Assembly: GCA_029953675.1 (NCBI GenBank)
Contig: JAMWBK010000012.1
Location: 1,091,868-1,155,867 of the forward strand
Reading direction: 5' to 3'
Origin: Rhodosorus marinus CCMP1338
Lineage: Eukaryota; Plantae; Rhodophyta
DNA: 64,000 nt
Shown: in pieces, positions 5,096 to 61,180 of the stretch
How the letters are laid out: each line of letters starts with the position of its first letter
Numbering within the stretch: position 1 is the stretch's first letter
The notes under the pieces: model-generated
The model's database searches: none
What the model saw: only the letters and a program-made list of their open reading frames with translations
Told to the model about the DNA's origin: nothing
Translations under genes and position numbers: made by a program

Positions 5096-5114
5096 GTTTG
5101 CCCCCAAACTCTGC

Positions 5115-29443: not shown

Positions 29444-29744
29444 ACCCTTCATCGGGAGACTCTGCCGTTCGAATAAGTAGAAGGTCCTGGGTAGTATGCT
29501 CCATACTGTGGATTTATTGATAGAGGAAGTAAACATCACCACGATGGGTCTTAAAATCAGGTATTACGAGCGCAAATGTAGCTAGGGTCGCTGGGAACAG
29601 GGATCCACTCATGGGGACTCGAAAGCCGCGAAGTTTTACCCAATTTATGAGCTCGACGAGACAACCTAGCGAACCCGGCCAGGTCCTTACATAGATTTCC
29701 AACCACTAGTTTGAAAAATTGGACTTTTCAAGGAAGCACACATC

Positions 29745-33120: not shown

Positions 33121-33124
33121 CTGA

Positions 33125-33990: not shown

Positions 33991-34999
33991 GGGGGGTGGA
34001 CTCCAATTTTGTGATGTACCTCTTGAGACATACGCTTTTTATCACTACACATGTTGTACACTTTTTGGCACTTTTTTGCACTTTTTACGCTTTTTTTCAG
34101 TGGTATGTTTTTCCGTGTGTCCTCTCCAATTGGGAAGAGAGTGTTGGAACTCCATACGTGATCTAAGCCTCATGTACTAGTCTAAGACAAATGACTTAGA
34201 CTAGAATCGTTTATATCTATATCTAGCACCAACGTAGGGTATAAAATGGACTGGTTTTTATTAGAATACACTAGCCACTCTGTGATCAGAGGGGTTCGTT
34301 GAGTAGAAGGGAACGGTGTATGCGCCTCCACGCGTCTCTATAGCTCTATAAGAACTTCCAGTTCCAACAGGGTATGAGCCCAGCTCACCGTATGGGAACT
34401 TCGTGAACTAAGAAGATGAGTATGGACTGGATTGTAAAGAAAGTTAATGGTTTGAGGAAATCCTTGCCAAGGAGGACTTCGTCTAGCTGCCCGTACCAAA
34501 GCGAAGAACCGGATGTGGAGGTTCGCGAAGAGCAATTGAGCATGATAATGATAGCTGACCGGACGCAGAGAGCCTACGAATTCAAGGAAGTATTCGCCGC
34601 CGCCATCCGTGTTGAGTACCTTAAGTCTCGCGCCTGTCTGCGTTTCTAACTATGCCTTGTATTCGTTGAAGTGCTGGTATATCTCGTTTTTCTTGCGTAG
34701 GAAGTAAACGCGCGTGTATCGGCTGTACTCGTCCCACGAAAATGGCATTGTAGTTTTGTGGCTACGCGGCCGCATTTGCTGGAATGTATGATATCTATAT
34801 TGTTTGCTCATACACCTTCTGTGCCGAGAGGTTACGAATCGTGCAAGACCTCCGAGGAAGTTAAGATAGTCCGTCTACCGAGGCACGGACGTCTTTCGCA
34901 TGCCACAGTGGTTTCAGATGTCATACATTCGGACACATGCGTTTGCCTTGAAGCCGCAAACGCAGTCGGTAAAACCTACTTTGCTTTTTTAGCACCATG

Positions 35000-38829: not shown

Positions 38830-39190
38830 GCCGTTCCTGAAAATAGTTTTACGAACACTCGGGTGGTCCTTCTCTATGTTGACTACCAGCAACAAATTGT
38901 TTTTTCCTTTGAAGCGTCAAAATCTGCTATTTTTAAACCTCCTACTAGGATAGTAGGAGAGATCCTAGGAGCAGTTGCAATAAGTGGGAGAGTACTACCT
39001 AGCCGATGTGAACCTTTCGCTTCATCCCAGACTAACGTAAAGCTCAGTAAACAAATTCAGTCAGTTCACATTCCGTCAAGTCCAATCCAAATGATTTTAG
39101 AGATTGAACTTAAGCCAATAAATAAATAAACAGTAAACGGAATTTTTTTTTTTTCAAAAACAGGTGGTTTCACTAGAGGTGGTGGTGGTT

Positions 39191-41282
39191 TTACTGGACT
39201 TTACTAGCATAGCCTGAAGCGCTACGCAGGGCGTGAAGATGAGCTAATAACTAGGGAGGGAAGCATGCAACCCCAGGCGCCGATGGTGCGCCTCGGAAAG
39301 CATGTCGCTGGAATATCGCCAAAGGGAGACACTTAAACGCCTCAAGAACGAATGGTTTAATCGGGGCTGAAAAAAAAAACCCCGAGGGGAAAAAAAGACT
39401 AAGCGCGGCGAAGTACTCGCGCCTCCAACATCAAAGCGGCATTCATGCGCCACAGCAGGAAACTTAAGCGGGTAAACAACGATTGAAGACGGTCAGGGCG
39501 TTCGCGGAACAACTCCCGAAGCCAGCGAGAACCAACAGAGTCCATGAACCCAAAGCACTCAATGATCAGGGGTACCAAGCGATGTGCTAGTGCCGAAGCA
39601 CGAACACCAGGGGAAGACAAAGCCCCCGCGTATTTGATCTCTTTGCGGCGTCTCATGCTGGCGGCGGCAGATCCACGGCGCTCCCCCGCAGCCGGGAGAT
39701 AACGACTAGCTTGAGGGTTAGGAACAGCAAGATCAACGTATGTGGTACGGCGGCTGTCGTCACAGGTGATCACCAGGTCGGCTACACGGCGTTCATCATT
39801 TTGAAAGTCCGCGACGGGTAAAGGTTTCTCACGTTCGATTTCCAGACCGGCTTGCCGGACTATAGGCCGAAGTTCCCGGTATAACAGGTTCAAGATCCGT
39901 GTATGGCGGCGGGTTCGAGCACCTTTCACCGCCGGGCAACTAGCGAGCATGTGGGCGCCAAAATCTGCGTTGTCTTCAGTCTGAGAGCAGAGAGGGCACG
40001 ACGAACCAATCTCGTACGGCCAAGGGGGCTGATGTAAGCCGAGGTATAAGCGCAGGGAAGTACGCACTTCGAAATCCGACAGTGTGAGTGGCGGAAAGGC
40101 TGGTACGGTCATGAGCCACTGAGAGCTAATAACCCCTCCAAGACTACGTAGGCGGGCGCGAGCGCGGGAAGATGAGACCATCTGCGCGAGGAGTCGGCCA
40201 TATGAAGCACGGTGCAAGTCCCAAGAAAGGATATTCTGCAGCGCATCCGTGCGTGCTTGAGCTCGGCTCCCAGCGCGCTGGGAATCATCAGGAGGATCAA
40301 CTGGAACTTCTTCTTCTGCGGGAGAGCGCCAAACATTCAGTAGGATGCTCAGCAAAACATTTCCGCAACCACTCTAAACCCGACTTATCCACGTGACCAA
40401 AGCTTTCCACAATGAATGGCTGGAACCGGTGAGAGCGACCCTCAGCGCAAGGCAGACTGGCCATGCTCTCAGCATACCGTCGTTCCTTAACTCTTCGAAC
40501 GGTTGAAGCCGCGGCCCCCCCGGCGGCGGGCGGCTGCGGTGAGGTGGGCGCTGGCCCCGGGGCAGGTAATCGCAAGGTCCACATATGTTGAGCGTCTGGC
40601 AGCAGCGTCGGAGACGAGGAGATCGGCTATACAACGGGGCGGTGCAGAGTCCGAGATTGATCTGGGCAGTTCCGACTCAACCTCAACCGTATGCCCTATC
40701 CGAGTCAAAAATTCGCTGAGGATGTACTTGAGGCGAGTGTGACGCCTCGTACGGAGACCTCTCAACAGTCCGCAGGAACCCAGGAAGTGGTAGCCACAAG
40801 CGTCAATCCGACTCTCACATCCCTGACAGAAAGACGGCCGATTAGAGTGCCACGGAGCCAGTGGCAAACCGAGATAGATCCGTGCGGCAGAACGGAACTG
40901 GAAAGCATCGAGCGGATGACTCAATGACGACGGTAGAGTGGTTAACCACAAGTGCGAGAGATGGCCTCCCATGCCGCGGAGACGAGCGGCAGTGATAGGC
41001 GGCGTGAGAGGAGAATTGAGCATGACTGTGTGAGCGGCACTGTGTTGGCCCCAGGTGAGGCTATGTTGAATCACATCAGTGCGGGAGCTCCACAATCGGC
41101 TCAAACCCGGGTAGTCTGCAACAGGGGACCCGGGGCTAGCCTCTCCGTCATCGGCAAGAACTCGGTCGAGGGGAGAATCCTCAATCGCTTCAGCTCGTCC
41201 CCATAACAGCTCCCTCCAGGAACGAAAGCGGGACCTATTTGCGTCCGGCACGGCGTTAAACCTCCTGAACGCGTGTTGAAGA
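39191..41282 (-). mobile_element. 5'-truncated family C element split by a family B insertion
   Basis: C sequence ctcaaga|gcgcc resumes at 40323 after the B block; tail ttactggactttactagc at ~39191. Confidence 0.9.
39348..40321 (-). mobile_element. 5'-truncated family B element nested in family C
   Basis: Near-identical to 16455-17430; AGA duplicated at 39345-39347 and 40323-40325. Confidence 0.92.
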
Positions 41283-42320
41283 GACTGAACTAGAGCGGGA
41301 GGTTTCGGCAGAACGCTCACCAGACACATACGAGCCGTCGGAGCAACGATGGTCGACTGCACAGCTGGCGGACCAGATCTGTGCATAGTCGCGAACAATA
41401 CAACGGAGGCTCGGACCAGAAACCCCGCCGCGGATCTCGGTTTTTGCAGGGTAACTACCCTGCAAAAACCGCGAGAAACATCTCTTCGAAGCGCACCGGG
41501 CGAGACTGCAGCTTGGAATAATGGTTCAATACATCAAACCCTCTCTCGAGAGGCACACCATTGTTCATTCCAAAGCTTGGTCACCAACCCACGAATCTCC
41601 CCTGAAAACCGAGCTCGAATACGGTCCGCCGCGGGATCCGGGTCGGGAGTCTGGCTGCGTGAAATACCAACGCTGACACCGAAAAAATTGAGTGCGGTTG
41701 AGATGCAGGTAAACGTTCGACAAGTGCTGGGGCCGCCAATTCCGGGATTGTTGACCACCGAGAAGTGCACTAGTTGCCGGAGTAAAAACGGAAGGACTGG
41801 GGTACAACGGTTTCATCACTGCCCAACATCAACTGGACTGTGGCAACGTAGGCACGACGAAATCTGCAGAGAGTTGGCAAGGTGGCTGAGGCGATGGCGG
41901 ATACGCGGCGAGAGCTGCGGAGAAGTGGAAAATCGCTCACTTCAAGGAAGCGATGGTGATCGAGAAACCGGATGACAAGTTCATCCCGATAGCGATAGAG
42001 ACGTTTGGGCGTACGGGGCAAATGGCACAAGAGTTCCTCCGCGACAGCTGCAAACACTTACTACACAGGAGTGAGGAGCCGAGAGACGTGAGATCGCAGA
42101 TAAACCGGCAACTATGGCGAGGTAACGCAGAGATAGCACTAGGCGCTTTGCGCGTGGACCAGTTGGAGAATCCGCTGGTGCCCGTTTTTTCTTTTGAACG
42201 TAGCATGAGACCCCGGTAGCGGGGTTCCAGTAAGTTTCTCCCTAGATAGGATTAGACGTAGTGTTGCGCTGCAGTAGGCAGCTGCCCAGTACAGCTTACG
42301 GTTACGTTATTCTGGGGTTA
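41283..42320 (+). mobile_element. Family A 3' fragment (knuckle, RLE, 3' UTR) ending in telomeric repeats
   Basis: CTSC...RFHHC, RRHDE, PIAIETFG; ends ggttacgttattctggggtta. Confidence 0.9.
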
Positions 42321-42618
42321 GTGCAGGCTTTGCCACGTCTTGGGGTAAGAGAGAAGATTTTGGACGGCCTTGTTTGTGGAAAACAACGGTAAAAGTTTAT
42401 ACACAGTTACACGTATGATTGTGAGGGAGGTACGCGGGCCGTACCCCGAACCTCTTGTGATCCCGGGCCTCGGGTACCCGGGAAATGGAGAATGAGCACC
42501 AGCAACAGCCTGCAGGAGACGCGCAGGAAGCTAGGACCATCGCAGATCTGAATTCATAAAACAGAGCAGAGAGGCAGGCTGCAGCCGACCCAGCCGCCGC
42601 TTTTCTCCATCAGCTACG
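42321..42618 (+). mobile_element. Family A 5' fragment (start of ORF1, ATG 42415), truncated
   Basis: atgattgtgagggaggtacgcgggccgtaccccgaacctcttgt is identical to 127-170. Confidence 0.85.
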
Positions 42619-42699
42619 ACCGAAAAAGAAACAAAACCCCAATCCTCGACAACAACTCCTCCCACTTACTATACATTGATCCACTTCGTAACCCCTTAC

Positions 42700-45600
42700 T
42701 ACTGGACTTTACTGGACTTTACTGGACTGGACTTTACTAGCATAGCCTGAAGCGCTACGCAAGGCGTGAAGATGAACTAATAACTAGGGAGGGAAGCATG
42801 CAACCCCAGGCGCCGATGGCGCGCCTCGGAAAGCATGTCGCTGGAATATCGCCTAAGGGAGACACTTAAACGCCTCAAGAGCGCCAAATATTCAGTAGGA
42901 TGCTCAGCAAAACATTTCCGCAACCACTCTAAACCCGACTTATCCACGTGACCAAAGCTTTCCACAATGAATGGCTGGAACCGGTGAGAGCGACCCTCAG
43001 CGCAAGGCAGACTGGCCATGCTCTCAGCATACCGTCGTTCCTTAACTCTTCGAAGGGCTGAAGCCGCGGCCCCCCGGCGGCGGGCGGCTGCGGTGAGGTG
43101 GGCGCTGGCCACGGGGCAGGTAATCGCAAGGTCCACATATGTTGAGCGTCTGGCAGCAGCGTCGGAGACGAGGAGATCGGCTATACAACGGGGCGGTGCA
43201 GAGTCCGAGATGGATCTGGGCAGTTCCGACTCAACCTCAACCGTATGCCCTATCCGAGTCAAAGATTCGCTGAGGATGTACTTGAGGCGAGTGTGACGCC
43301 TCGTACGGAGACCTCGCAACAGTCCGCAGAAACCCAGGAAGTGGTAGCCACAAGCGTCAATCCGGCTCTCACATCCCTGACAGAAAGACGGCCGATTAGA
43401 GTGCCACGGAGCCTGTGGCAAACCGAGATAGATCCGTGCGGCAGAACGGAACTGGAAAGCATCGAGACGATGACTCAATGACGACGGTAGAGTGGTTAAC
43501 CACAAGTGCGAGAGGTGGCCTCCCATGCCGCGGAGACGAGCGGCAGTGGTAGGCGGCGTGAGAGGAGAATTGAGCATGACTGTGTGAGCGGCACTGTGTT
43601 GGCCCCAGGTGAGGCTATGTTGAATCACATCAGTGCGGGAGCTCCACAATCGGCTCAAACCCGGGTAGTCTGCAACAGGGGACCCGGGGATAGCCTCTCC
43701 GTCATCGGCAAGAACTCGGTCGAGGGGACAATCATCAATCGCTTCAGCTCGTCCCCATAACAGCTCCCTCCAGGAACGAAAGCGGGACCGATTTGCGTCC
43801 GGCACGGCGTTGCACCTCCTGAACGCGTGTTGAAGACCATCATAAATTGTCAAAAGCGGGGGCGGCAGGGTCACTGGATCCTCGTTGGTCAAAGCTCGAG
43901 CCAAGAGGCAGGCACTTCGCATCCGGAAGGTCACCAACGTTCGCAGCGCGGTAGCCCAGGAGGCAACCGCCGCTGGCGAGCATACCAGCCCACGGTCTGC
44001 GACGCCGAATCCCCCTAATCGCAACGGTAGAGCGATCTGTGCACGAATAAAGTCCCTGTCGGGAGCAGCTTCAAGATCGAGGGGCTCATCCAAGAGCGTT
44101 CCCCAGTGTTGCAGGGTCATTTCGTCGGCTTTAGCCGCGATCCACGAGCCCCAAGCTGGAGGCAGGCTGCGCAACCAGTAGTTGAGTCTGGGACCGGCAC
44201 AAAAGCGGGAAAGCAAGCAGGCCGATTGCAGCATGCTGTCGGGTAGGTGCTGAATGGCGTCGGTGAGTTGCTTGTGCCGTGCCAAAACTCGCTCGCAGGA
44301 TGCTTGGACAAAGTTGTCAGTCCCCAATCCGACGCCGTGGTGTTCGAACCCTTCACGTTCGCTGATTAGTCGCAGAGTGGGTGGCAGAGAGGTCAGCGAC
44401 ACGTCCCTCGGGGGGAGAAAGCGACATTTTTCTGTTTCCACAGTCAAACCGACGCGACGTGCAACGTGCAACGCCGTGCAAGCGGCCTTTACTAGCATAG
44501 CCTGAAGCGCTACGCAAGGCGTGAAGATGAACTAATAACTAGGGAGGGAAGCATGCAACCCCAGGCGCCGATGGCGCGCCTCGGAAAGCAGGACTTTACT
44601 AGCATAGCCTGAAGCGCTACGCAAGGCGTGAAGATGAACTAATAACTAGGGAGGGAAGCATGCAACCCCAGGCGCCGATGGCGCGCCTCGGAAAGCATGT
44701 CGCTGGAATATCGCAAAGGGAGACACTTAAACGCCTCAAGAGCGCCAAATATTCAGTAGGATGCTCAGCAAAACATTTCCGCAACCACTCTAAACCCGAC
44801 TTATCCACGTGACCAAAGCTTTCCACAATGAATGGCTGGAACCGGTGAGAGCGACCCTCAGCGCGAGGAAGACTGGCCATGCTCTCAGCATACCGTCGTT
44901 CCTTAACTCTTCGAAGGGCTGAAGCCGCGGCCCCCCGGCGGCGGGCGGCTGCGGTGAGGTGGGCGCTGGCCACGGGGCAGGTAATCGCAAGGTCCACATA
45001 TGTTGAGCGTCTGGCAGCAGCGTCGGAGACGAGGAGATCGGCTACACAACGGGGCGGTGCAGAGTCCGAGATGGATCTGGGCAGTTCCGACTCAACCTCA
45101 ACCGTATGCCCTATCCGAGTCAAAAATTCGCTGAGGATGTACTTGAGGCGAGTGTGACGCCTCGTACGGAGACCTCGCAACAGTCCGCAGGAACCCAGGA
45201 AGTGGTAGCCACAAGCGTCAATCCGGCTCTCACATCCCTGACAGAAAGACGGCCGATTAGAGTGCCACGGAGCCTGTGGCAAACCGAGATAGATCCGTGC
45301 GGCAGAACGGAACTGGAAAGCATCGAGACGATGACTCAATGACGACGGTAGAGTGGTTAACCACAAGTGCGAGAGGTGGCCTCCCATGCCGCGGAGACGA
45401 GCGGCAGTGGTAGGCGGCGTGAGAGGAGAATTGAGCATGACTGTGTGAGCGGCACTGTGTTGGCCCCAGGTGAGGCTATGTTGAATCACATCAGTGCGGG
45501 AGCTCCACAATCGGCTCAAACCCGGGTAGTCTGCAACAGAGGACCCGGGGATAGCCTCTCCGTCATCGGCAAGAACTCGGTCGAGGGGAGAATCCTCAAT

Positions 45601-48600
45601 CGCTTCAGCTCGTCCCCATAACAGCTCCCTCCAGGAACGAAAGCGGGACCGATTTGCGTCCGCCACGGCGTTGCACCTCCTGAACGCGTGTTGAAGACCA
45701 TCATAAATTGTCAAAAGCGGGGGCGGCAGGGTCGCTGGATCCTCGTTGGTCAAAGCTCGAGCCAAGAGGCAGGCACTTCGCATCTGGAAGGTCACCAACG
45801 TTCGCAGCGCGGTAGCCCAGGAGGCAACCGCCGCTGGCGAGCATACCAGCCCACGGTCTGCGACGCCGAATCCCCCTAATCGCAACGGTAGAGCGATCTG
45901 TGCACGAATCAAGTCCCTGTCGGGAGCAGCTTCAAGATCGAGGGGCTCATCCAGGAGCGTTCCCCAGTGTTGCAGGGTCATTTCGTCGGCTTTAGCCGCG
46001 ATCCACGAGCCCCAAGCTGGAGGCAGGCTGCGCAACCAGTAGTTGAGTCTGGGACCGGCACAAAAGCGGGAAAGCAAGCAGGCCGATTGCAGCATGCTGT
46101 CGGGTAGGTGCTGAATGGCGTCGGTGAGTTGCTTGTGCCGTGCCAAAACTCGCTCGCAGGATGCTTGGACAAAGTTGTCAGTCCCCAATCCGACGCCGTG
46201 GTGTTCGAACCCTTCACGTTCGCTGATTAGTCGCAGAGTGGGTGGCAGAGAGGTCAGCGACACGTCCCTCGGGGGGAGAAAGCGACATTTTTCTGTTTCC
46301 ACAGTCAAACCGACGCGACGTGCAATCGCTTCGATCGCGGTCAGTCCCCTAGCCAGGGTGTCAGGGGTGCCCAGCAATGTTACGTCATCGTGGTACGCGC
46401 AGATTCGAAGATCCGAGACCTCAGTCGAAAGACGTAAAAGTACGAGCTGTAGGGCACAGGCATGAAGAAGAGGTCCGCAAGGGTCGCCTTGTTGGACGCC
46501 AGTATGTGCTTGAAAAACAGTGCCCTCCGTTGTCAAGTAGGGGAGGCTCTCCCCTCCGTAAATACCCGATAGAAACGGCCACGCCTCCGGAAACACACGT
46601 CGGAGCACCTCTAGCGCATGCGTCCGCGACACGCTGTTGAATGCGTTCCGGAAATCAACCACCAAGACTCCCCACTCCGGCCTACTGGCGCGTTCTAGCT
46701 CGATCCCATGGGTGATCAGTTCACAACCCCCAGAAAATCCCACCCCTACTTGCAAGGGCGCCATAAAAGCTGTGACGCGCTGGCGAAGGCGCTGGCATAG
46801 CCACCTCCCGGCTAACTTCCGTAGGCTCTCCACCATCCCGATCGGCCGGAGACGCGGGTGGGCCGGCTGGTGGTCAGGTTTCGTGAGCAAGCAAAGCTGT
46901 GCCTGCCGGAGATGTTCCTATGGCGCAGACGCACCCGATACGCCCTGGAACAACTTGTTAAGGATCCTCAGAGGCGCGCTCTTGCCAGGCTGGCTCAGGG
47001 CCTGCAATAGCTCTGTTCTTAGTCCGGAGGGTCCGGGACAGCGTCCCCGACGCGAGGTACGAAGCAAATCCTCCAGGTCAGACTCACTGAGCGTCAGATC
47101 GATGCGAAACCTGGCCAACTCCGGACGGTCCAAGAATGCCTCGAATTCAGGGGACAAATCCACGTCGGACTCAGGGAACAAAGACGACACCGTCTGGGCG
47201 AGACTATCATCGTAGGGAAGGACAGGCGCCTGGCCCTCCAAAACCCGCGCCGCTCGACTTAAATCGCCCACTGCTACCAATTTCTGTACTCGAGCCGGCA
47301 CGGGCGACACTGTGCCATGCCGAGTCCGACGGGCGGATGGTGCTGACGACGCCAAATAGCTGCGCTGTAGTACTTCGAAGTCTCCCTTCAAGAACAGGGC
47401 CAGTCGGTCTCGTACTCGCCATCTGCGCTCCGATGTGTGAATGGGGGCCAGAATCAGGCGCGGCATGACCCCCAGAAAAACCCAAATGACTGTGTCCCGA
47501 ATGTTGCGAGCCAGGCTCGTGAAGATGAAATCGAGAATGGTTCCAGCTACTAGAAGGTCTCCACGAGGAAGGACTTTACTGGACTTTACTGGACTTTACT
47601 AGCGGACTTACTAGCGGACTTTACTGGACTTTACTAGCATAGCCTGAAGCGCTACGCAAGGCGTGAAGATGAACTAATAACTAGGGAGGGAAGCATGCAA
47701 CCCCAGGCGCCGATGGCGCGCCTCGGAAAGCATGTCGCTGGAATATCGCCAAAGGGAGACACTTAAACGCCTCAAGAGCGCCAAATATTCAGTAGGATGC
47801 TCAGCAAAACATTTCCGCAACCACTCTAAACCCAACTTATCGACATGACCAAAGCTTTCCACAATGAACGGCTGGAACCGGTGAGAGCGACCCTCAGCGC
47901 AAGGCAGACTGGCCATGCTCTCAGCATACCGTCGTTCCTTAACTCTTCGAAGGGCTGAAGCCGCGGCCCCCCGGCGGCGGGCGGCTGCGGTGAGGTGGGC
48001 GCTGGCCACGGGGCAGGTAATCGCAAGGTCCACATATGTTGAGCGTCTGGCAGCAGCGTCGGAGACGAGGAGATCGGCTATACAACGGGGCGGTGCAGAG
48101 TCCGAGATGGATCTGGGCAGTTCCGACTCAACCTCAACCGTATGCCCTATCCGAGTCAAAAATTCGCTGAGGATGTACTTGAGGCGAGTGTGACGCCTCG
48201 TACGGAGACCTCGCAACAGTCCGCAGGAACCCAGGAAGTGGTAGCCACAAGCGTCAATCCGGCTCTCACATCCCTGACAGAAAGACGGCCGATTAGAGTG
48301 CCACGGAGCCTGTGGCAAACCGAGATAGATCCGTGCGGCAGAACGGAACTGGAAAGCATCGAGACGATGACTCAATGACGACGGTAGAGTGGTTAACCAC
48401 AAAAGCGAGAGGTGGCCTCCCATGCCGCGGAGACGAGCGGCAGTGGTAGGCGGCGTGAGAGGAGAATTGAGCATGACTGTGTGAGCGGCACTATGTTGGC
48501 CCCAGGTGAGGCTATGTTGAATCACATCAGTGCGCGAGCTCCACAATCGGCTCAAACCTGGGTAGTCTGCAACAGGGGACCCGGGGCTAGCCTCTCCGTC

Positions 48601-49123
48601 ATCGGCAAGAACTCGGTCGAGGGGAGAATCCTCAATCGCTTCAGCTCGTCCCCATAACAGCTCCCTCCAGGAACGAAAACGGGACCGATTTGCGTCCGGC
48701 ACGGCGTTGCGCCGGCGGAGGGGCTACGCAAGGCGTGAAGATGAACTAATAACTAGGGAGGGAAGTATCTGTAGTGGACTTTACTAGCATAGCCTGAAGC
48801 GCTACGCAAGGTGTGAAGATGAACTAATAACTAGGGAGGGAAGCATGCAACCCCAGGCGCCGATGGCGCGCCTCGGAAAGCATGTCGCTGGAATATCGCC
48901 AAAGGGAGACACTTAAACGCCTCAAGAGCGCCAAATATTCAGTAGGATGCTCGGCAAAACATTTCCGCAACCACTCTAAACCCGACTTATCCACGTGACC
49001 AAAGCTTTCCACAATGAATGGCTGGAACCCGTGAGAGCGACCCTCAGCGCAAGGCAGACTGGCCATGCTCTCAGCATACCGTCGTTCCTTAACTCTTCGA
49101 AGGGCTGAAGCCGCGGCCCCCCC
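42700..49123 (-). mobile_element. Head-to-tail array of six 5'-truncated family C copies
   Basis: 3' ends at ~42700, 44487, 44591, 47571, ~48723 and 48776; lengths about 1.78, 0.10, 2.93, 1.14, 0.05 and 0.35 kb. Confidence 0.92.
44617..47500 (-). pseudogene. Longest family C ORF2 fragment (RT, knuckle, RLE); in-frame TAG at 46918-46920 and a 1-bp deletion near 44715
   Basis: CPGPSGLR, RPIG, VDFRNAFN, GVQQGDP, AYHDD; ORFs 46918..47466 and 44617..46890 are in the same frame. Confidence 0.9.
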
Positions 49124-49172
49124 GTTATTGCACATCCCGATGGACTCTTGCTCCATCGGGATGTGCAATAAC

Positions 49173-50702
49173 TATTAAGATCAAAAGGGTGTTGCACCTC
49201 CAGAGATTTTGGCACAGCCCGAGCATAATTTTGCATAGCCGGACATTGCTGGAAGGTGGAGACGTCACACACTACGCAGAAGCATTCCCAGTCATCGGGA
49301 CCAGCAGCACACGGACAACGTACGCTCAGCGCACTGTCCAAAATACTCCAGCTCCAGAATCAGAGGCTCAACTCCGACCAGCAGGACGCCCGGGCTCACA
49401 GACCCAGCAGGCAGCGCTGCGACAGCTGCACACCACAGTGGGAGGGTCCTCCTGGGGACCTGAAACCAAACCGATCCTTGCCACCCTTCGAAACGTCCCC
49501 CCCCCCCCAAGGCAGGATGATGTGGCACCTTCGGAATTCACCACCGTCCTCTGGCGCGCGCTGGGAATCACAGCCTCTCACATCGCGCATGTGGACTTCA
49601 TGTTACACACGCAAGCTTGCTCTGCCATCCGGATGCAGTGTGCAAAGCGCTATCGCCCGAGGCGTTTTCAGAACAGGGATCTTTGGATCTTTCACACTGA
49701 GACATCCTGACCGGCAAGTGACTCTCCACACAGGACAGGGATTGGAGGCTGACAACCTGCTGGGCTACAACGAAAGGCAAAGGATCGCCCCAGAGGAGAT
49801 CCCAGCCCAGACGCTGCAACGGGCCATACAACAGATCATCAGGATTCGCGCGAGGTTCGGAAAGAGACGTCTGTCGTTCTCTACTCTCGCAGCCATCCAT
49901 GAAACGCTGGTAGAGCGTCTACGAGCGTTACGAGGCCTGCAACATCCACCAGCGGTCGCCTGGGAGAGTGTGGAACTTAGTCTGGGGTACACGATCGCAC
50001 CGATGTACGGTGTGTGAACAACCACACGACTTCAAAGGGATCCAGCGTTTGCATCATTGTCGCACATCATCAGGTATGCGAACTAAGCGTCACGATGAGC
50101 TAAAAACGGAGTTGAGTCGATGGTTGCATCTGTGGAATTTCACAGACTTGCAAGTGGAACCGCAGGGGTTCTTTAGGTAATCAGGGATACGCCCTGACAT
50201 AGTAGGGAGACACCCAACAAGTGGACACGTGTACGTGTTGGACGTGATGGTGACGTCACCACTGCAGCGACAACACTTGCGACAGACCAGCTGGAAGAGT
50301 GGGTATGCGGCAGAGAAAGCAGAACATAGCAAAGTGGCACATTATGCGGAAGCAATCTCGAATGAGGGGGAGAGAGCTGATTTTAGCACAATTTGTGGTC
50401 GAAACCTATGGGCGACCTGACCAGAAGGGCTGGAGTTCCTTCGAAAAGCCACGGCACATCTCCATGATCGGGAGTCGCATTTATCGCCGGTGAGAGAACA
50501 ATTGAATCGTATCCTATAGCAACACAACGCACAGTTGGTACAACACGCGATTGACAAAGACCGGGCAGACCTGTCGATACTCCCACTAGCTAGAAGTTAG
50601 ATGAGACCCCTGGACAGGGGGTCTATAAGTGAGTTTAGAGCGAAGATAGAGTAGTGGTATTTCGCTACGGTAGTTAGCTGCCGAATGAAGGGTATGGGGT
50701 TA
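49173..50702 (+). mobile_element. Diverged family A-type element with a large internal deletion (ORF1 piece joined to knuckle/RLE), ending in GGGGTTA
   Basis: HYAEAFP ORF1 homology; C..C..HHC, RPDI..LDV; 3' UTR gtagtg...cggtagttagctgccgaat. Confidence 0.8.
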
Positions 50703-53520
50703 CCACCACCGTTCCTAAAAGCTCTACGAACAAAGTTCTCCGATTTAACGACTGTCGCTATCCATGACGATATTACGATCGTGGGACCGCTGCAGGGACT
50801 GAAGCAAGACCTAGCCTGGAGCCGAACTATGCTCCCATCTCTAGGGGCCCGCCTACTACTCAACAAATGCACGCTCTACGGCCGAGCCTTGACGACGGCG
50901 CGAGTCATCAATCGCGAGATACCTGGCATACATGTCACCCGAGAAGGTGTGACTATCCATTCGATCCGGATAGGAAACCGGGAATATATCGAGCACGAGT
51001 GCCGTGCGCTTCAAAATAAGCACGAAAAGCTCATCAAGGAAATAGCACAGCTACCGCAACATGAACTTAACGCACAGGTCGCATTGTTCAGGTACTGCGC
51101 GGAAACGCGGCTAGATTACCTGCTACGATGCCTAGCCTACTCGTTCGGCCGCAGTCTGGCACGGGAGGGGGACACCATGACGAGATATAATCTGGAAACC
51201 TTGCTCGGAGGCCTCGCTACCTGTGGCATGGAGGACGAGGAGCACCTGGGACACATGTGGGAACAGATTGCGCTGACTTTGCCGGTGGGGGGGATTAGGG
51301 TTCGCTACTAGACGGCGTATCCAACCGATCGCTTACTACTCGGCTTGGACAAATACCTTTCGAAGCAATACAGGCGACTGGCCTTACATTACTGAGCTGC
51401 AGAGGCAGGTCTATACAGATAGAACTCCGGCTACGAACACCGCGACACGACTACAATGGTCCACAGAACACCTTGCAGACCAGATAAAATCATCTGCTCG
51501 AGCGATGCGACGCAGGCTGCGGCCCGAAACTCTGCCGCGGATCAGAAGACTGGCCACCCTGCAGCAGACGAGGGAAAACCCCCGAGGAGACGCCCCAGAA
51601 GACTGTGGCGATTGGAATAATGGTTCTACACAACAAACTTGATGAGCTTTTCGTGCTTATTTTGAAGCGCACGGCACTCGTGCTCGATATATTCCCGGTT
51701 TCCTATCGGGATCGAATGGATAGTCACGCCTTCTCGGGTGACATGTATGCCAGGTATCTCGCGATTGATGACTCGCGCCGTCGTCAAGGGCTCCGATCGA
51801 GCTCAGCTTTTTCGACTCCAACGTCGGCAGTTCGCGCAGCCAGACTCCCGATCAAGAGCCCGCCGCGGACCTGATTCGAGCGCGATGTTCGCCAGAGATG
51901 GGCGGATTGTTAACCAGGCGTTTGGAACGCTGAATGGCGTGCCTCCCGAGAGAGATAGCACAGCTACCGCAACATGAACTTAACGCACAGGTCGCATTGT
52001 TCAGGTACTGCGCGGAAACGCGGCTAGATTACCTGCTACGATGCCTAGCCTACTCGTTCGGCCGCAGTCTGGCACGGGAGGGGGACACCATGACGAGATA
52101 TAATCTGGAAACCTTGCTCGGAGGCCTCGCTACCTGTGGCATGGAGGACGAGGAGCACCTGGGACACATGTGGGAACAGATTGCGCTGACTTTGCCGGTG
52201 GGGGGGATTAGGGTTCGCTACTAGACGGCGTATCCAACCGATCGCTTACTACTCGGCTTGGACAAATACCTTTCGAAGCAATACAGGCGACTGGCCTTAC
52301 ATTACTGAGCTGCAGAGGCAGGTCTATACAGATAGAACTCCGGCTACGAACACCGCGACACGACTACAATGGTCCACAGAACACCTTGCAGACCAGATAA
52401 AATCATCTGCTCGAGCGATGCGACGCAGGCTGCGGCCCGAAACTCTGCCGCGGATCAGAAGACTGGCCACCCTGCAGCAGACGAGGGAAAACCCCCGAGG
52501 CGACGCTCCAGAAGACTGGCGATTGGAATAATGGTTCTACACAACAAACTCTCTCTCGGGAGGCACACCATTCAGCATTCCAACGCATTGTTAACAATCC
52601 GCGCATCTCTGGCGAACATCGCTCTCGAATCAGGTCGGCGGCGGGCTCTGGATCGGGAGTCTGGCTGCGCGAACTGCCGACGTTGGAGCCGAAGAAGCTG
52701 AGCTCGATCGAAATGCAGGTGAATATCCGACAACTACTGGGGCTACCGATTCCAGGGCTGCGAACTACGGAAAAATGTACTCGATGCCGTGGTAAACACG
52801 GCATCGCCTCAAATGGAGTACAACGCTTTCATCATTGCCCCACGTCGACTGGGCTGTGGCAACGTAGGCATGACGAGATATGCACGGAGATCGCAAGGTG
52901 GCTGAACCGGTGGAACTTTGTGGACATCGAGCAGGAGCCAGAGAAGTACTTTGAAAATTACGGGCTACGGCCAGACATCATTGCTACGCATCCGAGGACA
53001 TTTCAACGGTATGCGCTGGACGTGACGGTTGTGTCTCCTTTGCAAGGGAAGTATCTGAGGCGTAGTCAGGATGAGAGTGGATATGCAGCAAGATGTGCGG
53101 AGAGGTGGAAGAAAGTGCACTACAAGGAGGCGATGACGATAGAACACCCGGATGACAAGTTCATCCCAATTGCAATAGAAACATTTGGGCGGACTGGACC
53201 GATGGCACAGGAGTTTCTGCGGGACAGCTGCAAGCATTTGTTGCACCGGAGCCTAGATCTGAGCGATTTAAGATCGCAGATAAACCGGCAACTTTGGCGA
53301 GGTAATGCGGAGATAGCGCTAGGCGCTTTGCGCGTAGACCAGTTGGAGAATCCACTGGTGCCTGTTTTTTCTTTAGAACGTAGGATGAGACCCCGGTAGC
53401 GGGGTTGGAGTAAGCATTCCCCTAGATAGCGATAGAAGTAGTGTTACGCTGCAGCAGGCAGCTGCCCAGTAAAGTTTACGGTTACGTTAGTCTGACGTTA
53501 GTCTGGGGAGTCTGGGGTTA
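50703..53520 (+). mobile_element. 5'-truncated family A element with an internal duplication and inversion, ending in telomeric repeats
   Basis: VAIHDD, intact RLE ORF 52683..53399 (RPDII..LDV, K..HY, PIAIETFG), tail ggttacgttagtctg. Confidence 0.9.
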
Positions 53521-53958
53521 CGAACGTTAAGGGGCTAACAAGGACAAATATACGATGAGGTTTAAGGAAAGCTTTATGATCGAGAAGGAGATGCTGGGAC
53601 AGTACCCAGAACCTTTCCGCCACCCGGGCACCAATGGCCCTGGCCCAGGCGAAGAGGGGATGGCGACACCGAATGGGAGTCGGATGCCAGAACCGAGCGG
53701 CAGGACCACAATCACCCAGGATTTACAAGCAGCGAACACACAGGAGGCTTACGGGATGGAGACTCAAGAGGCAACTGGACCTGCGGCAGCCTTTTTGCAC
53801 CAACTTCGCGCCTTCGACCAGTGCTATCAGGACTTGGGAATTGGTGAAGCAGTTATCGCGGACTTCTACCAGGCTGTATTCAAACTCTACTCACGGATTA
53901 ACAGCACCACTGAACTCGAAGGAATTACCGCACGTCTCTCCGAGCTTTCAGCAAAACC
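53521..53958 (+). mobile_element. Family A-type 5' fragment (ORF1 N terminus), truncated
   Basis: GQYPEP and AFLHQLRAFDQCYQDLGI...FYQAVFKLYSRINS match ORF 127..753. Confidence 0.85.
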
Positions 53959-54528: not shown

Positions 54529-55410
54529 ATCACGAGCAAGACTCGACGATGTCAATCCGATCCGTGCCTCTGACTGCTCTCGAAATCGCTACCCTCTCGT
54601 CCAAAAGTCTTCACTCGTAGAAGCTAAAAAGGCTCTCAGCTCCAGCCTAACCGGAGTACCTTTCACGGAAGTGGAGCTTTCCACTCACCTCCCCATCTTA
54701 CTCCGCAGACAATCACCGTATATGTACTGAATGAATGTGTTTATTGGGAGACTGAGAAAGAACTTCGAGGGTGAAAAAGTCTAATACTGGCCAAATTCAT
54801 GTAACTCCGGAAAATACTGGAGTATGCCAAAGCCACCAACTTACAAAGGCGCCCCAAAATCTGGTCCCTTTGGATACACGGTGCTTGAAGACTGCAGTCT
54901 GCAGTCTGCAGTCTCTTAGATGACGTCCGCAAAGGAATTCCAGCACTCCCAACGGTTTATTTCTACTTCGGTAGCCTCATGTTGTGACCGAAAAGCAATT
55001 TCGTCGATGATTTCCCAAAGGAATCGGGCGCTCCCAACGCTTTTTCGTCGATGACATCCAAAAGGAGTCCGGCGCTCCCAACGGCTTTTTATCTGTTTTG
55101 TTCGTTGGATGGGAATGTTGTCGGTGAAAATGTGTTCAAGACGAGCTTGGGAAAAGAGCTCACTAATTCGTTGCAAGGTACCCCTTTCTTGGGACTTGCG
55201 CCGTGCCTGCATATGACCAGCTTCTCGCGCAGGTGGTCGCCGCGTTCCACCCAATCCCCCACACCTCCAATCCCAACCGCCCAACGGCTTTTTTCCTTAA
55301 GAAAGAAACATTTCTTTCACAAATCGATTAATATATTACAATTTATAGCAAAACACGTACTTGTCTTAAATTTATTTCTCCGTATCACTTTATACTATTT
55401 TACATAATAT

Positions 55411-58301
55411 GAATGAATGAATGAATGAATGAATGAATGAATGGTTTAATCGGAGGCTGAAAAAAAAACCCCGAGGGGAAAAAAAGACTAAGCGCGGCGA
55501 AGTACTCGCGCCTCCAACATCAAAGCGGCATTCATGCGCCACAGCAGGAAACTTAAGCGGGTAAACAACGATTGAAGACGGTCAGGGCGTTCGCGGAACA
55601 ACTCCCGAAGCCAGCGAGAACCAACAGAGTCCATGAACCCAAAGCACTCAATGATCAGGGGTACCAAGCGATGTGCTAGTGCCGAAGCACGAACACCAGG
55701 GGAAGACAAAGCCCCCGCGTATTTGATCTCTTTGCGGCGTCTCATGCTGGCGGCGGCAGATCCACGGCGCTCCCCCGCAGCCGGGAGATAACGACTAGCT
55801 TGAGGGTTAGGAACAGCAAGATCAACGTATGTGGTACGGCGGCTGTCGTCACAGGTGATCACCAGATCGGCTACACGGCGTTCATCATTTTGAAAGTCCG
55901 CGACGGGTAAAGGTTTCTCACGTTCGATTTCCAGACCGGCTTGCCGGACTATAGGCCGAAGTTCCCGGTATAACAGGTTCAAGATCCGTGTGTGGCGGCG
56001 GGTTCGAGCACCTTTCACCGCCGGGCAACTAGCGAGCAGGTGGGCGCCAAAATCTGCGTTGTCTTCAGTCTGAGAGCAGAGAGGGCACGACGAACCCATC
56101 TCGTACGGCCAAGGGGGCTGATGTAAGCCGAGGTATAAGCGCAGTGAAGTACGCACTTCGAAATCCGACAGTGTGAGTGGCGGAAAGGCTGGTACGGTCA
56201 TGAGCCACTGAGAGCTAATAACCCCTCCAAGACTACGTAGGCGGGCGCGAGCGCGAGAAGATGAGACCATCTGCGCGAGGAGTCGGCCATATGCAGCACG
56301 GTGCAAGTCCCAAGAAAGGATATTTTGCAGCGCATCCGTGCGTGCTTGAGCTCGGCTCCCAGCGCGCTGGGAATCATCAGGAGGATCAACTGGAACTTCT
56401 TCTTCTGCGGCAACCACTGGGTCAATCTCCCCTAGAACAGGTTCAGGCGCAGGACGAATCCCCGGGGCGGAGCCTCGAGAGCGGTCAAATACAGCTCGCC
56501 AGTCAGGAAGACGGGGTTGAACGGTTTCGGGGAGACTAGTACAGGAATTCAGGGCGGTTTGGAGCTCCAGAAACAAGTCTTGGGCGCTTTCCGGTACGCT
56601 GGGAAGCAAGACACCCCGCGAGAGGCTCGCCATCAAATTGCGGAACTTCGAGATACCCAAGCTGCTCAAAGTGGGAAGTGCGGTTCCCCAGGCCCCTACT
56701 GCAGCTGCAGGTTGGACCACAACACGATTGCAGAGGCCCAGTCCCCCCAATCGCAATGGGAGGCCTACCTGGGCGCGCACAACATCACAGGTGGGTCGCG
56801 GCAGAGCGCTCAGCTCTTCATCGAGAAAATACCCCAGGTCACGGAAACTTTCAGCATCCGCACGAGTGGCCAACCACCGGCCCCAATGAGTTGGAAGTGA
56901 GCGAAGCCAATAGGTTAACCGCTGACTGCAACAATACCGAAACAGCAACAACGAGCACTGGAGAAAGCCCGGAGGTAGCCGTCGAAGCTCTGCAACCAGC
57001 TGTCTGTGCTTACCGAGGAGCTGCAGCAACTCGCCTTCAACGAAGGACGGCGACCCGTAGGGGATGCCTAAGTGGACAAAACCATCCGGTCTCCAAATAT
57101 CCTGGAACGACGCAGGTACCTGCTGCTCTTGTGCAGCTACACCTCCCCAGTAGAACGATTTGTGATGATTAACCTCCAGGTCAACCCGCGAAGCCAAGGA
57201 GCGGAGACGATCATAAGCGAGTGCTAGAGTATCAGGGGGCCCCAGGAGGCACACGTCGTCGTGGTATGCAACCGTACGAACCTGCGGGAATTCGGAGCGA
57301 AGACAAAGCAAGACGAGTTGTAGTCCACAGGCATGTAGGAAAGGGGACAAGGGATCACCCTGTTGTACCCCTGTGCGCGCCGCAAACGTGTGTGAGGAAG
57401 CGCCAAGGGTGTCATAGGTAGCCCCACGACCAAGCGGAGAATAAATTCTACTAACAAAGGGAAAGCCTACAGGGAAGACTTCGCGCACCACGTGCATGAG
57501 AGCCGGACGAGAGACGCGGTTGAACGCATTGGTAAAATCTACAGAGAGGAGCCCAGAATCTGGGGAGAACGCCATTTCCGAACGGAGTAAAACAGACAAC
57601 AACTCACAGCCACCACGATAGCCCACGCCTAACTGCACGTGCCCAAAGAAACGGCGGGATTCGGGAACCAGGATTTTCACTAACCATCGCGCCGCCAATT
57701 TGCGGACCACCTCAACCAGGCCAATAGGGCGAATAGCAGGGCTCGAGGCCGTGTGGCCGGGCTTCGAAAGCAGACACAACTGCGAACGCCCGACCAAGAA
57801 CCACGCACACTCACACAGGGGATCACCATTCACAAGCGCTTCGACCACCCACGCCAACGCCTTCAAACCTTCATCACTTAAGAAACGGAGATATTCCACC
57901 CGCAGCCCCGAGGGCCCTGGGGAACGGCCCTTCGGAGCATCATGAACCAACTCACGCACCGCCTCCAGATTGACCACTAACCGCGCACTGGGATGTGGCG
58001 CGGCGCGGTACTCTTCCAACACTGATTCAAACGAGGAGTCCCAAGGGGAGCCTTCCGAGGGAAAGAGCAAACGGAGCGGTGAAGAAAGATCATCGGAGTA
58101 TGGAACCACAGGTTGCCGCTGCTGGAGGATCCCGGCTGCCCGCCGCAGATCACCGCCTGCCACCGCGTGACGCGCCCGATTCTGTCGAGAAGACCTAAAA
58201 GCTGAGGAAGCACTAGGAGAAAAGGAAGAGAGAGAAGCGAAATAAAGACGTTCGAGGTCCTCAAAGTCGCCGGAAAGGAACATTTGCAGTTTTCGGCGAG
58301 G
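55411..58301 (-). mobile_element. 5'-truncated family B element with (GAAT)8 tail on + and an intact RT-RLE frame (55488..58283)
   Basis: Near-identical to 16460-19320; possible TSD TATGAAT (55408-55414, 58306-58312). Confidence 0.95.
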
Positions 58302-58984: not shown

Positions 58985-61180
58985 ACTTGGCTTTATTGGA
59001 CTGGACTTTACTAGCATAGCCTGAAGCGCTACGCAAGGCGTGAAGATGAACTAATAACTAGGGAGGGAAGTATGCAACCCCAGGCGCCGATGGCGCGCCT
59101 CGGAAAGCATACTAGCATATTGGCATAGCCTACAGCGCTACGCAAACCGTGAAAAGGAACTAAGAACTAGATAGGGAAGCGTGCAAACCCCGGCAAGCAT
59201 GCTGCCCGAATATCGCCACAGAGAGACACTTAAGCGCCTCAAAAGTTCCAAGTATTCAACAGGATGCTCAGTGAAACATTTCCGCAACAACTCCAAACCC
59301 GACTTCTCCACGTGACCAAAGCTTTCCACAATGAAAGGCTGGAACCGGTGGGAGCGACCCTCAGCGCGAGGCAGGCAGGCCATACTCTCAGCATACCGTC
59401 GTTCCTTCACGCGGCGAAGGGCTGAAGCAGCTGCTCCCCGGCGGCGGGCGGCAGCCGTGAGATGGGGGCTTGCCACAGGGCATGTAATCGCGAGGTCAAC
59501 ATATGCTGAGCGTATGGGGGCAGCATCTCGGACGAGGAGATCTGCGATACAGCGGGGCGGTGCCCTATCCAAGACCGATCTGGGTAGTTCCGATTCCACC
59601 TCAACCGTATGCCCTACCCGAGTCAAACATTCGCTGAGAACGTGCTTGAGGCGAGTCTGACGCCTCGTACGAAGACCTCTCAACAGTCCGCATGAACCTC
59701 AGAAATGGTAACCACAAGCATCGATCCGACTCTCACATCCCTGACAGAAAGACGGCCGATTAGAGTGCCACGGAGCTTGTGGCAAACCCAGGTAAATCCG
59801 TGAGGCAGAGCGAAACTGGAAGGCATCCAGACGGTGACCCAGTGATGACGGCATGGTCGTTAACCACAAATGTGATAGATGGCCTCCCATGCCGCGGAGG
59901 CGAGCGGCGGTGGTAGGCGGTGTGAGTGGAGAGTTGAGCAAGATTGCGTGAGCGGCACTGTGTTGGCCCCAGGTGAGGCTATGTTGAATCACATCGGTGC
60001 GCGAGCTCTACGATCGGCTCAGACCCGGGTAATCGGCAACCAGTGACCCGGGGCTAGCTTCCCCCTCGTCGGCGAGTACTCTGTCGATGGGAGAGTCCTC
60101 GAGCGCCTCAGTTCGTCCCCATAACAGCTCCTTCCAGGAGCGAAATCTGGATCGGCTCTAGTCCGGCACGGCGTTGCACTTACTGACCGCCTGATGCAGA
60201 GCATCATAAATACTCAAAAGCGGTGGCGGAAGGGTCACAGGGTCTTCGCTAGTCAGTGCTCTAGCCAAAAGGCAAGCACTTCGCATTCGAAAACTCACGA
60301 AGGTGCGAAGTGCGGTAGCTCAGGAGGCGACCGCCGCTGCCGAGCATACGAGTCCACGGTCGGCCACTCCAAATCTGCCTAATCGTAAAGGTAGGACATT
60401 CTGGCCACGAATTAGGTCCCTGTCGGGAGCCGCTTCCACATCAAGGGGTTCATCCAGGAGCGTTCCCCAGTGCTTCAGCGTCGCCTCGTCCGCCTTGACT
60501 GCCATCCACGAGCCCCAGTGCGGTGGAAGGCTTCGCAGCCAGTAATTCAGTCGGGGGCCGGCACAAAAGCGGGAGAGCAGGCAGGCCGATTGGAGCATGC
60601 TATCCGGTAGGCGCTCAATGGCGTCGGTGAGCTGCTTATGGCGCGCTAAAACTCGTTCGCAAGAGTCTTGGACAAAGTTTTCACTCCCCAAACCGACGCC
60701 ATGGTGCTCGAGCCCCGCATGTTCACCAAGGGCCCGGAGACTAGGTGGCAGGGAGCCCCTCGAAACTTCACGCGGGCCGAGAAAACGGCATTTTTCGGGT
60801 TACACGGTTTGACCTACTCCACGTGCGAGTGTTTCGATCTGGGTCAGTCCCGGAGCCAAGTACTCAGGAGTGCCCAGTAACATCATGTCGTCATGGTAGG
60901 CACAGATGCGAAGCTCCGGCACCTCAGCCGCCAGTCGCTGGAGCACGAGCTGCCTCGCACATGCGTGAAGTACCGGCCTACAAGGATCACCCTGTTTAAC
61001 GCCAGTACTTGCTGCAAAAACAGATCCCTGTGTTGTCAAGTAACGGAGGCTCCCCCCTCCGTAAATACCGGATAGGAACGGCCACGCCTCCGAGAATCCC
61101 CTGCGAATCACCTCCAAAGCATGCGTCCGCGAGACGCTGTTGAACGCGTTACGGAAGTCAACTACCAAAACGCCCAATGC
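58985..61180 (-). mobile_element. Family C 3' end plus an older C-subfamily ORF2 fragment
   Basis: C tail and 3' UTR at 58985-59110; RLE, LPLRLG, AYHDD, GVKQGDP and VDFRNAFN. Confidence 0.88.

Follow-up and report, generated by a model that had tools for sequence, protein, structure and literature searches.

Family C is a retrotransposon without long terminal repeats (LTRs), or long interspersed nuclear element (LINE), from the nuclear genome of a red alga, Rhodosorus marinus CCMP1338. We analysed its copies in a 64,000-nt stretch of contig JAMWBK010000012.1 (positions 1,091,868 to 1,155,867; hereafter the window), where every copy begins at one fixed base and some are preceded by short tails made of reiterated terminal sequence. 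The tails, as well as the head-to-tail arrays in which the copies stand, were probably made by abortive copying of the RNA 3' end combined with re-initiation or template jumping during target-primed reverse transcription. In the following, coordinates without a prefix refer to the window, and C1 to C8 are its eight family C copies. L002 and L004 are two further stretches from the other arm of the same contig, each with its own coordinates.

The most informative tail belongs to copy C5 (47571-47625, minus strand) and consists of five short cDNA-like units of 10, 10, 13, 12 and 10 nt. The sequence GGACTTTACT stands at 47571-47580 and again at 47581-47590, followed by GGACTTTACTAGC at 47591-47603, GGACTTACTAGC (GGACT-TACTAGC) at 47604-47615 and another GGACTTTACT at 47616-47625, after which the body of C5 begins at 47626 with GGACTTTACTAGCATAGCC. 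Each of the five units restarts at the complement of the family C RNA 3' terminus (...AGUAAAGUCC-3'), and the 13-nt units contain AGC, bases of the element body. An earlier note on this DNA had described the unit series ahead of the full element, and re-reading the sequence at 47571-47638 reproduced it exactly. The unit sizes of 10 or 13 nt given there apply to four of the five units, whereas the fourth lacks one T and has 12 nt. The missing T lies in a T-run, and its loss could be a homopolymer error, as R. marinus was sequenced with Nanopore reads in the genome paper. The first four bases of the tail, GGAC (47571-47574), are common to the tail and the 5' end of the preceding copy C4. Tandem Repeats Finder detected the array with periods of 10 and 12-13. 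In the window, GGACTTTACT occurs 13 times against 0.2 expected from shuffling, and GGACTTTACTAGC with at most one mismatch nine times against 0.03 expected; all of these occurrences sit in family C starts or tails. A pre-existing (GGACTTTACT)n satellite serving as the insertion target was rejected, as all 13 exact units adjoin C bodies and none is free-standing.

The same start base is found throughout the family. It was seen in the window at 39196, 42729, 44484, 44591, 47626, 48776 and 59003 on the plus strand and at 24252 on the minus strand, bearing out the common restart point of the earlier note in all eight copies, and it recurs in five C copies of L002 and L004. These 13 copies thus combine a constant 3' terminus with variable 5' truncation, their lengths ranging from 107 nt to more than 4.7 kb, and every one begins at the complement of a single RNA terminus, ...GCUAGUAAAGUCC-3'. 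The blocks sharing the start base measured 107 nt (44484), 347 nt (48776), 1085 nt (47626), 1736 nt (42729) and about 2984 nt (44591). The earlier figures of about 345 nt and of 1.1-2.9 kb agree with these values, and the short block once placed at 44487 with about 105 nt exists, starting at 44484 with 107 nt. In L002 (3699-3965), a chain of blocks of 12, ~140, 37 and ~95 nt restarts at the 3' end with every block. The same restart joins blocks from 37 nt to ~3 kb, as would fit abortive synthesis with template jumping of the kind described for the R2 reverse transcriptase. The short units stand at the lower end of this continuous range of 5'-truncated blocks.

The tails vary from copy to copy. 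Among the 13 copies, the number of units ranges from none to at least five, with sizes of 5, 9, 10, 12 or 13 nt. In the window, C5 has the series of 10, 10, 13, 12 and 10 nt, C2 one of 10, 10 and 5 nt, and C7 units of about 9 and 5 nt. C3, C4, C6 and C8 are without tail units, and five of the eight window copies lack units of C's own tail. The bodies of the copies are 97-99% identical, with variants that are almost all private (singletons). Since the tails differ among copies with such similar bodies, most of the tail structure presumably arose at insertion and was not copied from one transcribed tail. The earlier claim that the tail is not transcribed would therefore hold for most of the tail structure.

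Some of the units match termini other than that of family C itself. Ahead of C1 (39163-39195) lie short 3'-terminal units of related families, in sense orientation AGTAAAACCACCACCACC and TCTAGTGAAACCACC, comparable to the copies ending at ~35100 and 10158. On the other arm (L002/L004), one copy carries GGGCTTTACT, GGGCTTTGCT and GGGCTTTAAT ahead of its GGACTTTACTAGC body, and another carries GCTTTTTACT, GGCTTTACT, CGCCTACGCT, GCTTTTTACT and GGACTTCACT, where GCTTTTTACT is the terminus of a neighbouring subfamily copy. Altogether, units matching the termini of other subfamilies were found at 39163-39195, 12017-12058, L002 20827-20856 and L004 ~16424-16472.

The junctions between blocks provided further evidence on how they were joined. 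C4 reads ...GAGGAAGGAC|TTTACT at its 5' end, compared with ...GAGGAAGGACGACTGG in a longer L002 copy that shows how C4's template went on, which leaves a 4-nt overlap, GGAC, with the terminal GUCC of the acceptor. This overlap at the junction of C4 with the first tail unit argues for priming on the extreme RNA end. Overlaps of 3 nt occur at L004 21170 (GAC) and L004 21545 (GCT). Three of the seven junctions with a known donor continuation show an overlap of at least 3 nt, for which we estimated a chance probability of ~1e-4; an overlap is seen only where the donor happens to end in GGAC, GAC or GCT. Donor ends are also marked by stutters, namely CGTGCAA (44455-44483), AGCATACT (59106-59127) and a 46-nt patch (48723-48768). 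Features of this kind are the marks of a reverse transcriptase carrying its cDNA over to the 3' end of a further RNA, as has been described for R2 (cited in PMC2881922).

We propose that the enzyme would start at the extreme RNA 3' end during target-primed reverse transcription. Synthesis would often abort after 5-13 nt, either inside a single-stranded end of 11 nt or once it had gone 2 nt into a predicted hairpin. It would then restart at an element RNA's 3' end, be it on the first RNA or on a different one, repeatedly, until one start turned processive. Each false start would leave one unit behind, yielding the series of 10, 10, 13, 12 and 10 nt at 47571-47625. The same end-directed switch would join long blocks head to tail and so build the array at 42.7-49.1 kb, sometimes guided by a 3-4 nt overlap between the growing cDNA and the last bases of the acceptor. 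The tail would then be the short-length extreme of a template-jump continuum and, for the most part, not a transcribed tail. Abortive initiation and re-priming on a fixed RNA end had been suggested in the earlier note. The element-derived units with body bases, all starting from the complement of the RNA end, and the GGAC overlap support the abortive initiation and re-priming, whereas the terminal units of other subfamilies argue against one fixed template.

The sense RNA ends in ...GCGUAG CGCUUCAG GCUAUGC UAGUAAAGUCC-3', with the stop codon 26 nt from the end. Both minimum-free-energy and centroid folds predicted a hairpin at 47637-47657 (minus strand; GCGUAGC, loop GCUUCAG, GCUAUGC) with 7 bp and a 7-nt loop, followed by the 11-nt single-stranded end UAGUAAAGUCC-3'; the UAG stop codon sits in the 5' arm of this predicted hairpin. 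A comparison of 17 distinct 3' ends from C and related families showed stems with hardly any variation next to variable loops and flanks, with no compensatory changes. A hairpin at the 3' end of the C RNA is plausible, and the 10- and 13-nt units may correspond to stops just ahead of it and 2 nt inside.

The protein sequences identify family C as a LINE of the restriction-like-endonuclease (RLE) type (R2/CRE-SLACS). Family C is mostly antisense on the plus strand, so the plus strand reads as first-strand cDNA. The C frame at 44617-46890 (minus strand) contains an RVT_1 reverse transcriptase (RT) domain (E 1.2e-15), as does the 1140-aa frame of a related family, family A, at 16508-19930 (minus strand). 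Profile A1, built from the C and A frames plus five database homologues, matched solved R2 proteins at the RT and at the C-terminal CCHC knuckle and RLE (9nl3_A), its positions 788-958 aligning to R2 residues 988-1155 (i-E 9e-10). R2 and L1 ORF2 are the best relatives of solved structure. Furthermore, the motifs of the C protein (CxxC..H....C, RRH, E, RCVAD, x12, D) fit the REL pattern of SLACS/CRE and the R-A-D variant of MoTeR/FoTeR (PMC12857005). No endonuclease of the apurinic/apyrimidinic (AP) type (Exo_endo_phos) precedes the RT, as Pfam gave RVT_1 alone in the 1140-aa family A frame, and no domain in the 502-aa N-terminal frame of the long L002 C copy; in the N-terminal frames it recognised no DNA-binding domain. 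A Penelope-like/Athena telomeric element was rejected because the RT profile matches R2 together with the RLE domain and because Rfam detected neither a hammerhead nor any other family in the window.

Placement within the CRE/SLACS clade has indirect support from the RepeatMasker label of the genome paper and from the name of one homologue, 'SLACS reverse transcriptase [Diplonema papillatum]'. The contig of the best protein homologue (L001) stops before any 3' tail. Site-specific insertion, as into spliced-leader genes or telomere repeats, was not observed among the C copies, which are flanked by other LINE copies, a family D fragment or unrelated sequence, a loose TTACT-like motif being the sole recurring feature of the flanks. 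Scanning metagenome contigs for the C 3' end gave 0 matches. The R. marinus genome was sequenced with Nanopore into 13 large contigs, twelve of them with at least one telomere, and its RepeatMasker table lists 4036 CRE/SLACS LINE copies covering 2.82 Mb, or 9.04% of the genome (PMC10250338). From this share, family C is among the dominant yet undescribed LINEs of R. marinus.

Several observations weigh against abortive initiation and template jumping, or against parts of that explanation. The RNA 3' end and the tail-free transcripts are inferred from genomic sequence, and jumping in a single event would leave the same sequence as a series of endonuclease-mediated insertions placed precisely at the 3' boundary of a copy already present. 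The predicted hairpin is small (z = -0.46 in a 60-nt context) and lacks compensatory substitutions; as its 5' arm overlaps the last part of the reading frame, coding may explain why it is conserved. For variant units, among them GGGCTTTGCT and GGGCTTTAAT, errors or mutations after insertion could be the source instead of other templates. The arrangement GGACT|GGACTTTACTAGC is common to C2 and C7 despite their differing flanks, and a GAAC tail variant is common to two family A copies (16444 and 39346); because of these shared sequences, some of the tail may be carried by the RNA. Moreover, a composite of short blocks at L002 3828-4396 is duplicated at 4437-5032 with 89% identity, and such composites can propagate as units, through DNA duplication or read-through transcripts.

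An alternative that we regard as unlikely is serial self-targeted insertion, in which the endonuclease would nick at the 3' boundary of an existing C copy, each block or unit would be a separate 5'-truncated event, and end-joining would regenerate the target. Cnl1, a CRE-like element, is reported to insert into its own copies, and end-joining to the target would likewise produce microhomology at the 5' junctions. Sequence specificity is typical of RLE-type LINEs (PMC2881922). However, unrelated sequence adjoins at least four copies (C1, C2, C7 and C8), and therefore the element's own 3' end is not needed as a target. Serial insertion would also demand a full cycle of nick, abort and repair for every 10-13-nt unit and a separate insertion event for each unit of a foreign subfamily. 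Private substitutions are somewhat more frequent in the right-hand copies (~1.1% in C5/C6 versus ~0.7% in C2/C4), as would fit newer copies being added on the left, but the copies do not differ significantly in age (7, 8 and 12 substitutions per 1085 nt). Ordering the array copies by age on the basis of their private substitutions was given up, since there were too few of them. We give slightly less credence to a transcribed tail with slippage, where a master RNA would carry (AGUAAAGUCC)n, initiation would occur within it, the copy number would slip as in the LINEs UnaL2 and I factor, and the restarts would merely reflect the repeat period. The family A GAAC variant at 16444 and 39346 and the GGACT|GGACTTTACTAGC arrangement in both C2 and C7 would be explained in this way, and TTACT-like motifs in the flanks of C2 (CCCTTACTACT), C7 (CATTTACTTG) and a copy of the C' family (CACTTACT) could pair with such an RNA tail. 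On the other hand, a transcribed tail sits poorly with the five of eight window copies without C's own units and with the 5-nt and other-subfamily units; the body sequence in the 13-nt units goes beyond slippage on a pure 10-mer array, and the GGAC, GAC and GCT overlaps put the acceptor site at the element's own terminal bases.

Events at the DNA level after insertion (replication slippage, unequal exchange or tandem duplication), or an assembly artefact, appear improbable as the source of the tails and arrays. The 107-nt pair of C3 and C4 forms a clean 2.0-copy tandem repeat, the 600-bp composite in L002 is duplicated, and the 12- and 13-nt units differ by one T in a T-run, a typical error of the Nanopore sequencing used for this genome (PMC10250338). 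Nevertheless, bodies diverged by 1-2% leave little time for minisatellite evolution, tails and restarts of this kind are seen again at many independent junctions, spread over three separate parts of the contig, and slippage leaves unexplained the mixture of 10-, 13- and 5-nt units from the terminal base, the foreign units and the microhomology at donor ends. Hardly credible, finally, is addition to a chromosome end, by repeated priming from the chromosome 3' end with erosion in between, as for HeT-A/TART. The window is a chromosome end, its last base being the last of the 1,155,867-bp contig, where a G/T-rich 16-nt repeat lies, and seven of the eight window C copies have 3' ends facing the centromere, the orientation expected of end-priming. 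The copies in L002 and L004 lie on the same strand, however, and so in the opposite orientation to their nearest telomere; C8 is inverted, no C junction contains a telomere repeat, and units of 10-13 nt cannot be remnants of erosion. The fixed orientation of HeT-A/TART-type end priming was thus not found on the two arms of the contig, and that candidate was rejected. The end of the C RNA showed no complementarity to the 16-nt terminal repeat beyond GG/CC.

Abortive initiation with template jumping, our preferred explanation, places family C next to several characterised systems. The eel element UnaL2 (L2 clade) and other 'stringent' LINEs have a 3' stem-loop, as predicted in C, a short single-stranded end for starting and genomically reiterated terminal bases. 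UnaL2 combines its stem-loop with a (UGUAA)n tail, explained by 'template slippage reminiscent of telomerase' (PMC1636434). Whereas UnaL2 uses an AP-type endonuclease and a uniform 5-nt unit present in its RNA, family C is of RLE type and has mixed 5-13-nt units, about half of its copies untailed and units of other subfamilies. The I factor also repeats its terminal bases in its tail, but its unit is a uniform 3 nt, and it is an I-clade element with an AP endonuclease. Chaboissier et al. reportedly argued in 2000 that the I-factor tail is generated by the reverse transcriptase at integration and varies among insertions, and they are said to have compared it to telomerase. In Drosophila, this tail is (TAA)n and repeats the element's terminal bases (PMC3747384). 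The reiteration of an element's own terminal bases in a number varying by copy, the feature that characterises UnaL2 and I-factor tails, is present in family C. Like R2, family C combines RT, CCHC knuckle and RLE, and it appears to initiate precisely at the 3' end and to continue cDNA on the 3' end of a second RNA with a few paired bases. End-to-end template jumping has been attributed to the R2 reverse transcriptase (Bibillo and Eickbush 2004, as cited in PMC2881922). Jumping by R2 is an in vitro property and its genomic copies stand singly in 28S genes, whereas the jumps of family C appear to leave genomic head-to-tail arrays and short tails.

The fungal CRE-like RLE LINEs MoTeR, FoTeR and Cnl1 form truncated tandem arrays in subtelomeres (PMC12857005, bioRxiv 10.1101/845669). 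Family C shares with them the R-A-D variant of the (R/K)PD motif and the tandem arrays of 5'-truncated copies. The fungal elements have junctions with telomere repeats and a fixed orientation to the chromosome end, whereas family C has its own terminal bases at its junctions and occurs in no fixed orientation; family D, described below, is closer to them than family C. The resemblance to telomerase lies in the repeated copying of a short stretch beside a helix and the return to the same start base. Telomerase, however, copies an internal template that includes an alignment region, its repeats are uniform and the enzyme is of the TERT type, whereas family C would use a free RNA 3' end as template and has varying units, 13-nt units without realignment homology and apparently several RNAs. 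The comparison with repeat-addition processivity drawn in the earlier note fits less well, since the unit length is not fixed (5, 9, 10, 12 and 13 nt) and a unit ending in ...AGC cannot realign on ...GUCC-3'. Nor was the analogy to telomerase new, having already been drawn for UnaL2 (PMC1636434). A uniform repeat from a fixed template boundary disagrees with 5-13-nt units within and between tails, and realignment disagrees with units ending in ...AGC or ...ACT, for which ...GUCC-3' offers no complement. We also rejected a realignment by way of the internal AGU repeat, as its expected products, 5-nt TTACT units, were not seen.

The behaviour is thus already known from other LINEs, family C differing in its long mixed units, its apparent use of the RNA ends of other subfamilies and its red-algal host with an RLE-type element. 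No new mechanism is implied; a mechanism of L2- and I-clade LINEs, and of R2 in vitro, would be extended to an uncharacterised CRE-type group in Rhodophyta. The tail would represent a genomic record, at base resolution, of initiation by an R2/CRE-type reverse transcriptase, and the same behaviour seems to build head-to-tail LINE arrays of a class reported to make up ~9% of a red-algal genome. As R2-type enzymes now serve targeted gene insertion, their natural errors of initiation and template jumping are also of practical interest.

The array itself is composed as follows, all copies being on the minus strand. C2 (42704-44464) has its body at 42729-44464 and a tail at 42704-42728 made of GGACTTTACT, GGACTTTACT and GGACT. 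After its 5' end, the CGTGCAA stutter at 44455-44483 comprises three repeats, two adjacent and the third after a 3-nt insert. The 107-nt block C3 (44484-44590) starts with GGCC and ends with ...GGAAAGCA, and is followed by C4 (44591-47574; ~2984 nt), which is 5'-truncated, the longest copy in the window and the carrier of the RT-CCHC-RLE frame at 44617-46890. The 5'-truncated C5 (47626-48710; 1085 nt) has the element 3' terminus at 47626. A complex junction at 48711-48775, consisting of 12 nt of uncertain origin, a 46-nt internal C 3' patch (48723-48768) and 7 nt, connects it to C6 (48776-49122; 347 nt), which has no tail. A perfect 21-bp inverted repeat (GTTATTGCACATCCCGATGGA ... TCCATCGGGATGTGCAATAAC) at 49124-49173 borders the array on the right, immediately beyond C6's 5' end.

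Outside the array, C1 (39163-41282, minus strand) has a body of two parts, 39196-39347 and 40323-41282, split by a 976-nt family A fragment (39346-40321). This fragment is 5'-truncated, with 2-3 bp of C sequence (AGA) duplicated, and represents either a nested insertion of the ordinary kind or the result of a template switch from C to A and back to C. C7 (58991-59110, minus strand) has a 108-nt body (59003-59110) and a tail of GCTTTATT and GGACT. It is followed by the AGCATACT stutter, repeated 2.8 times (59106-59127), and by a copy of the C' family (59118-61175). C8 (22884-24252, plus strand) is in sense orientation on the plus strand, 1369 nt long and without a tail, its 3' terminus lying at 24252. 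C3 (44484-44590) and C7 (59003-59110), with differing flanks and lengths of 107-108 nt, end at the same 5' point, ...GGAAAGCA, which possibly marks a site where synthesis repeatedly stops or switches, a short RNA existing in its own right, or a mini-element resembling a short interspersed nuclear element (SINE).

Several C arrays start directly after the apparent 5' ends of other elements. A 35-nt motif, CGACCGAAAAAGAAACAAAACCCCAATCCTCGACA, precedes C tails at 42617-42651 and L002 3311-3345, and A/C-rich sequence akin to it lies ahead of C tails at 42617-42703 and L004 ~16370-16420. Such sequences may represent 5' ends of full-length CRE-type elements. In the window copy, the 5' end (AGTAGTAAGGGGTTACG... 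in sense orientation) holds a partial terminal-repeat unit. Family A has tails of its own, which repeat the first four bases of the element (16424-16464, 39346-39354, 55409-55446 and 28455-28468), with (GAAT)n reaching up to ~9 copies at 55409. The GAAC variant shared by two of its copies suggests that part of a tail is inheritable through RNA.

At 63519-64000, the window ends in ~30 near-perfect copies of a 16-nt repeat, GGTTACGTTAGTCTGG, which run to its last base, also the last base of the 1.156-Mb contig; near 63759 there is one shortened variant of 8 nt. As in a telomere, the strand rich in G and T points outward; a 16-nt unit would be unusual. The repeat is probably the telomere, and a full-text literature search for six rotations of the 16-mer found no paper containing the sequence. 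A further LINE related to A and C by tblastn, family D, occurs at 53466-53523, 42286-42322, 61527-61565 (minus strand) and 63500-63534. It ends in ...AGTAAAG(T/G)NTAC, always followed by the 16-nt terminal repeat in one or two units, which holds for internal positions too and for either orientation; at 53480, these units are partial and out of register. Family D looks like either a telomere-repeat-associated LINE of the MoTeR/SART/TRAS kind or a LINE with RNA-borne telomere units. One could speculate that the hairpin 11 nt from the RNA end is a true template boundary for CRE reverse transcriptases of R. marinus, producing regulated short repeats, and that family D might seed or maintain the 16-nt chromosome-end repeat. 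We consider this a long shot; if true, a living intermediate would link the tail synthesis of LINEs to a telomerase-like maintenance of chromosome ends.

The remainder of the window contains other repeats and genes. A degenerate 500-bp satellite with a 9-nt period (TTTTACACT) and higher-order periods of 18, 27 and 57 lies at 32604-33116 and 34057-34096, directly 3' of an A-like LINE copy (33122-33981). A Ty3/gypsy-type LTR retrotransposon at 731-5351 has a 981-aa pol frame (1742-4687) encoding protease, RT, RNase H and integrase, and its 175-bp LTRs (731-904 and 5177-5351) are 96.6% identical. An intronless gene on the minus strand at 13499-15163 encodes a protein with sulfatase and PKD domains. 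Its paralogues on the same contig are 51-64% identical, two of them located 49-106 kb from the contig's other end (L002, L004), which looks like a subtelomeric gene family; the nearest relatives outside Rhodosorus in our search were mostly bacterial. Finally, an inverted duplication with 99% identity (24255-25257 and 28573-29575) encloses ~3.3 kb of other sequence, and each of its arms encodes a 232-aa protein with a Spondin_N domain.

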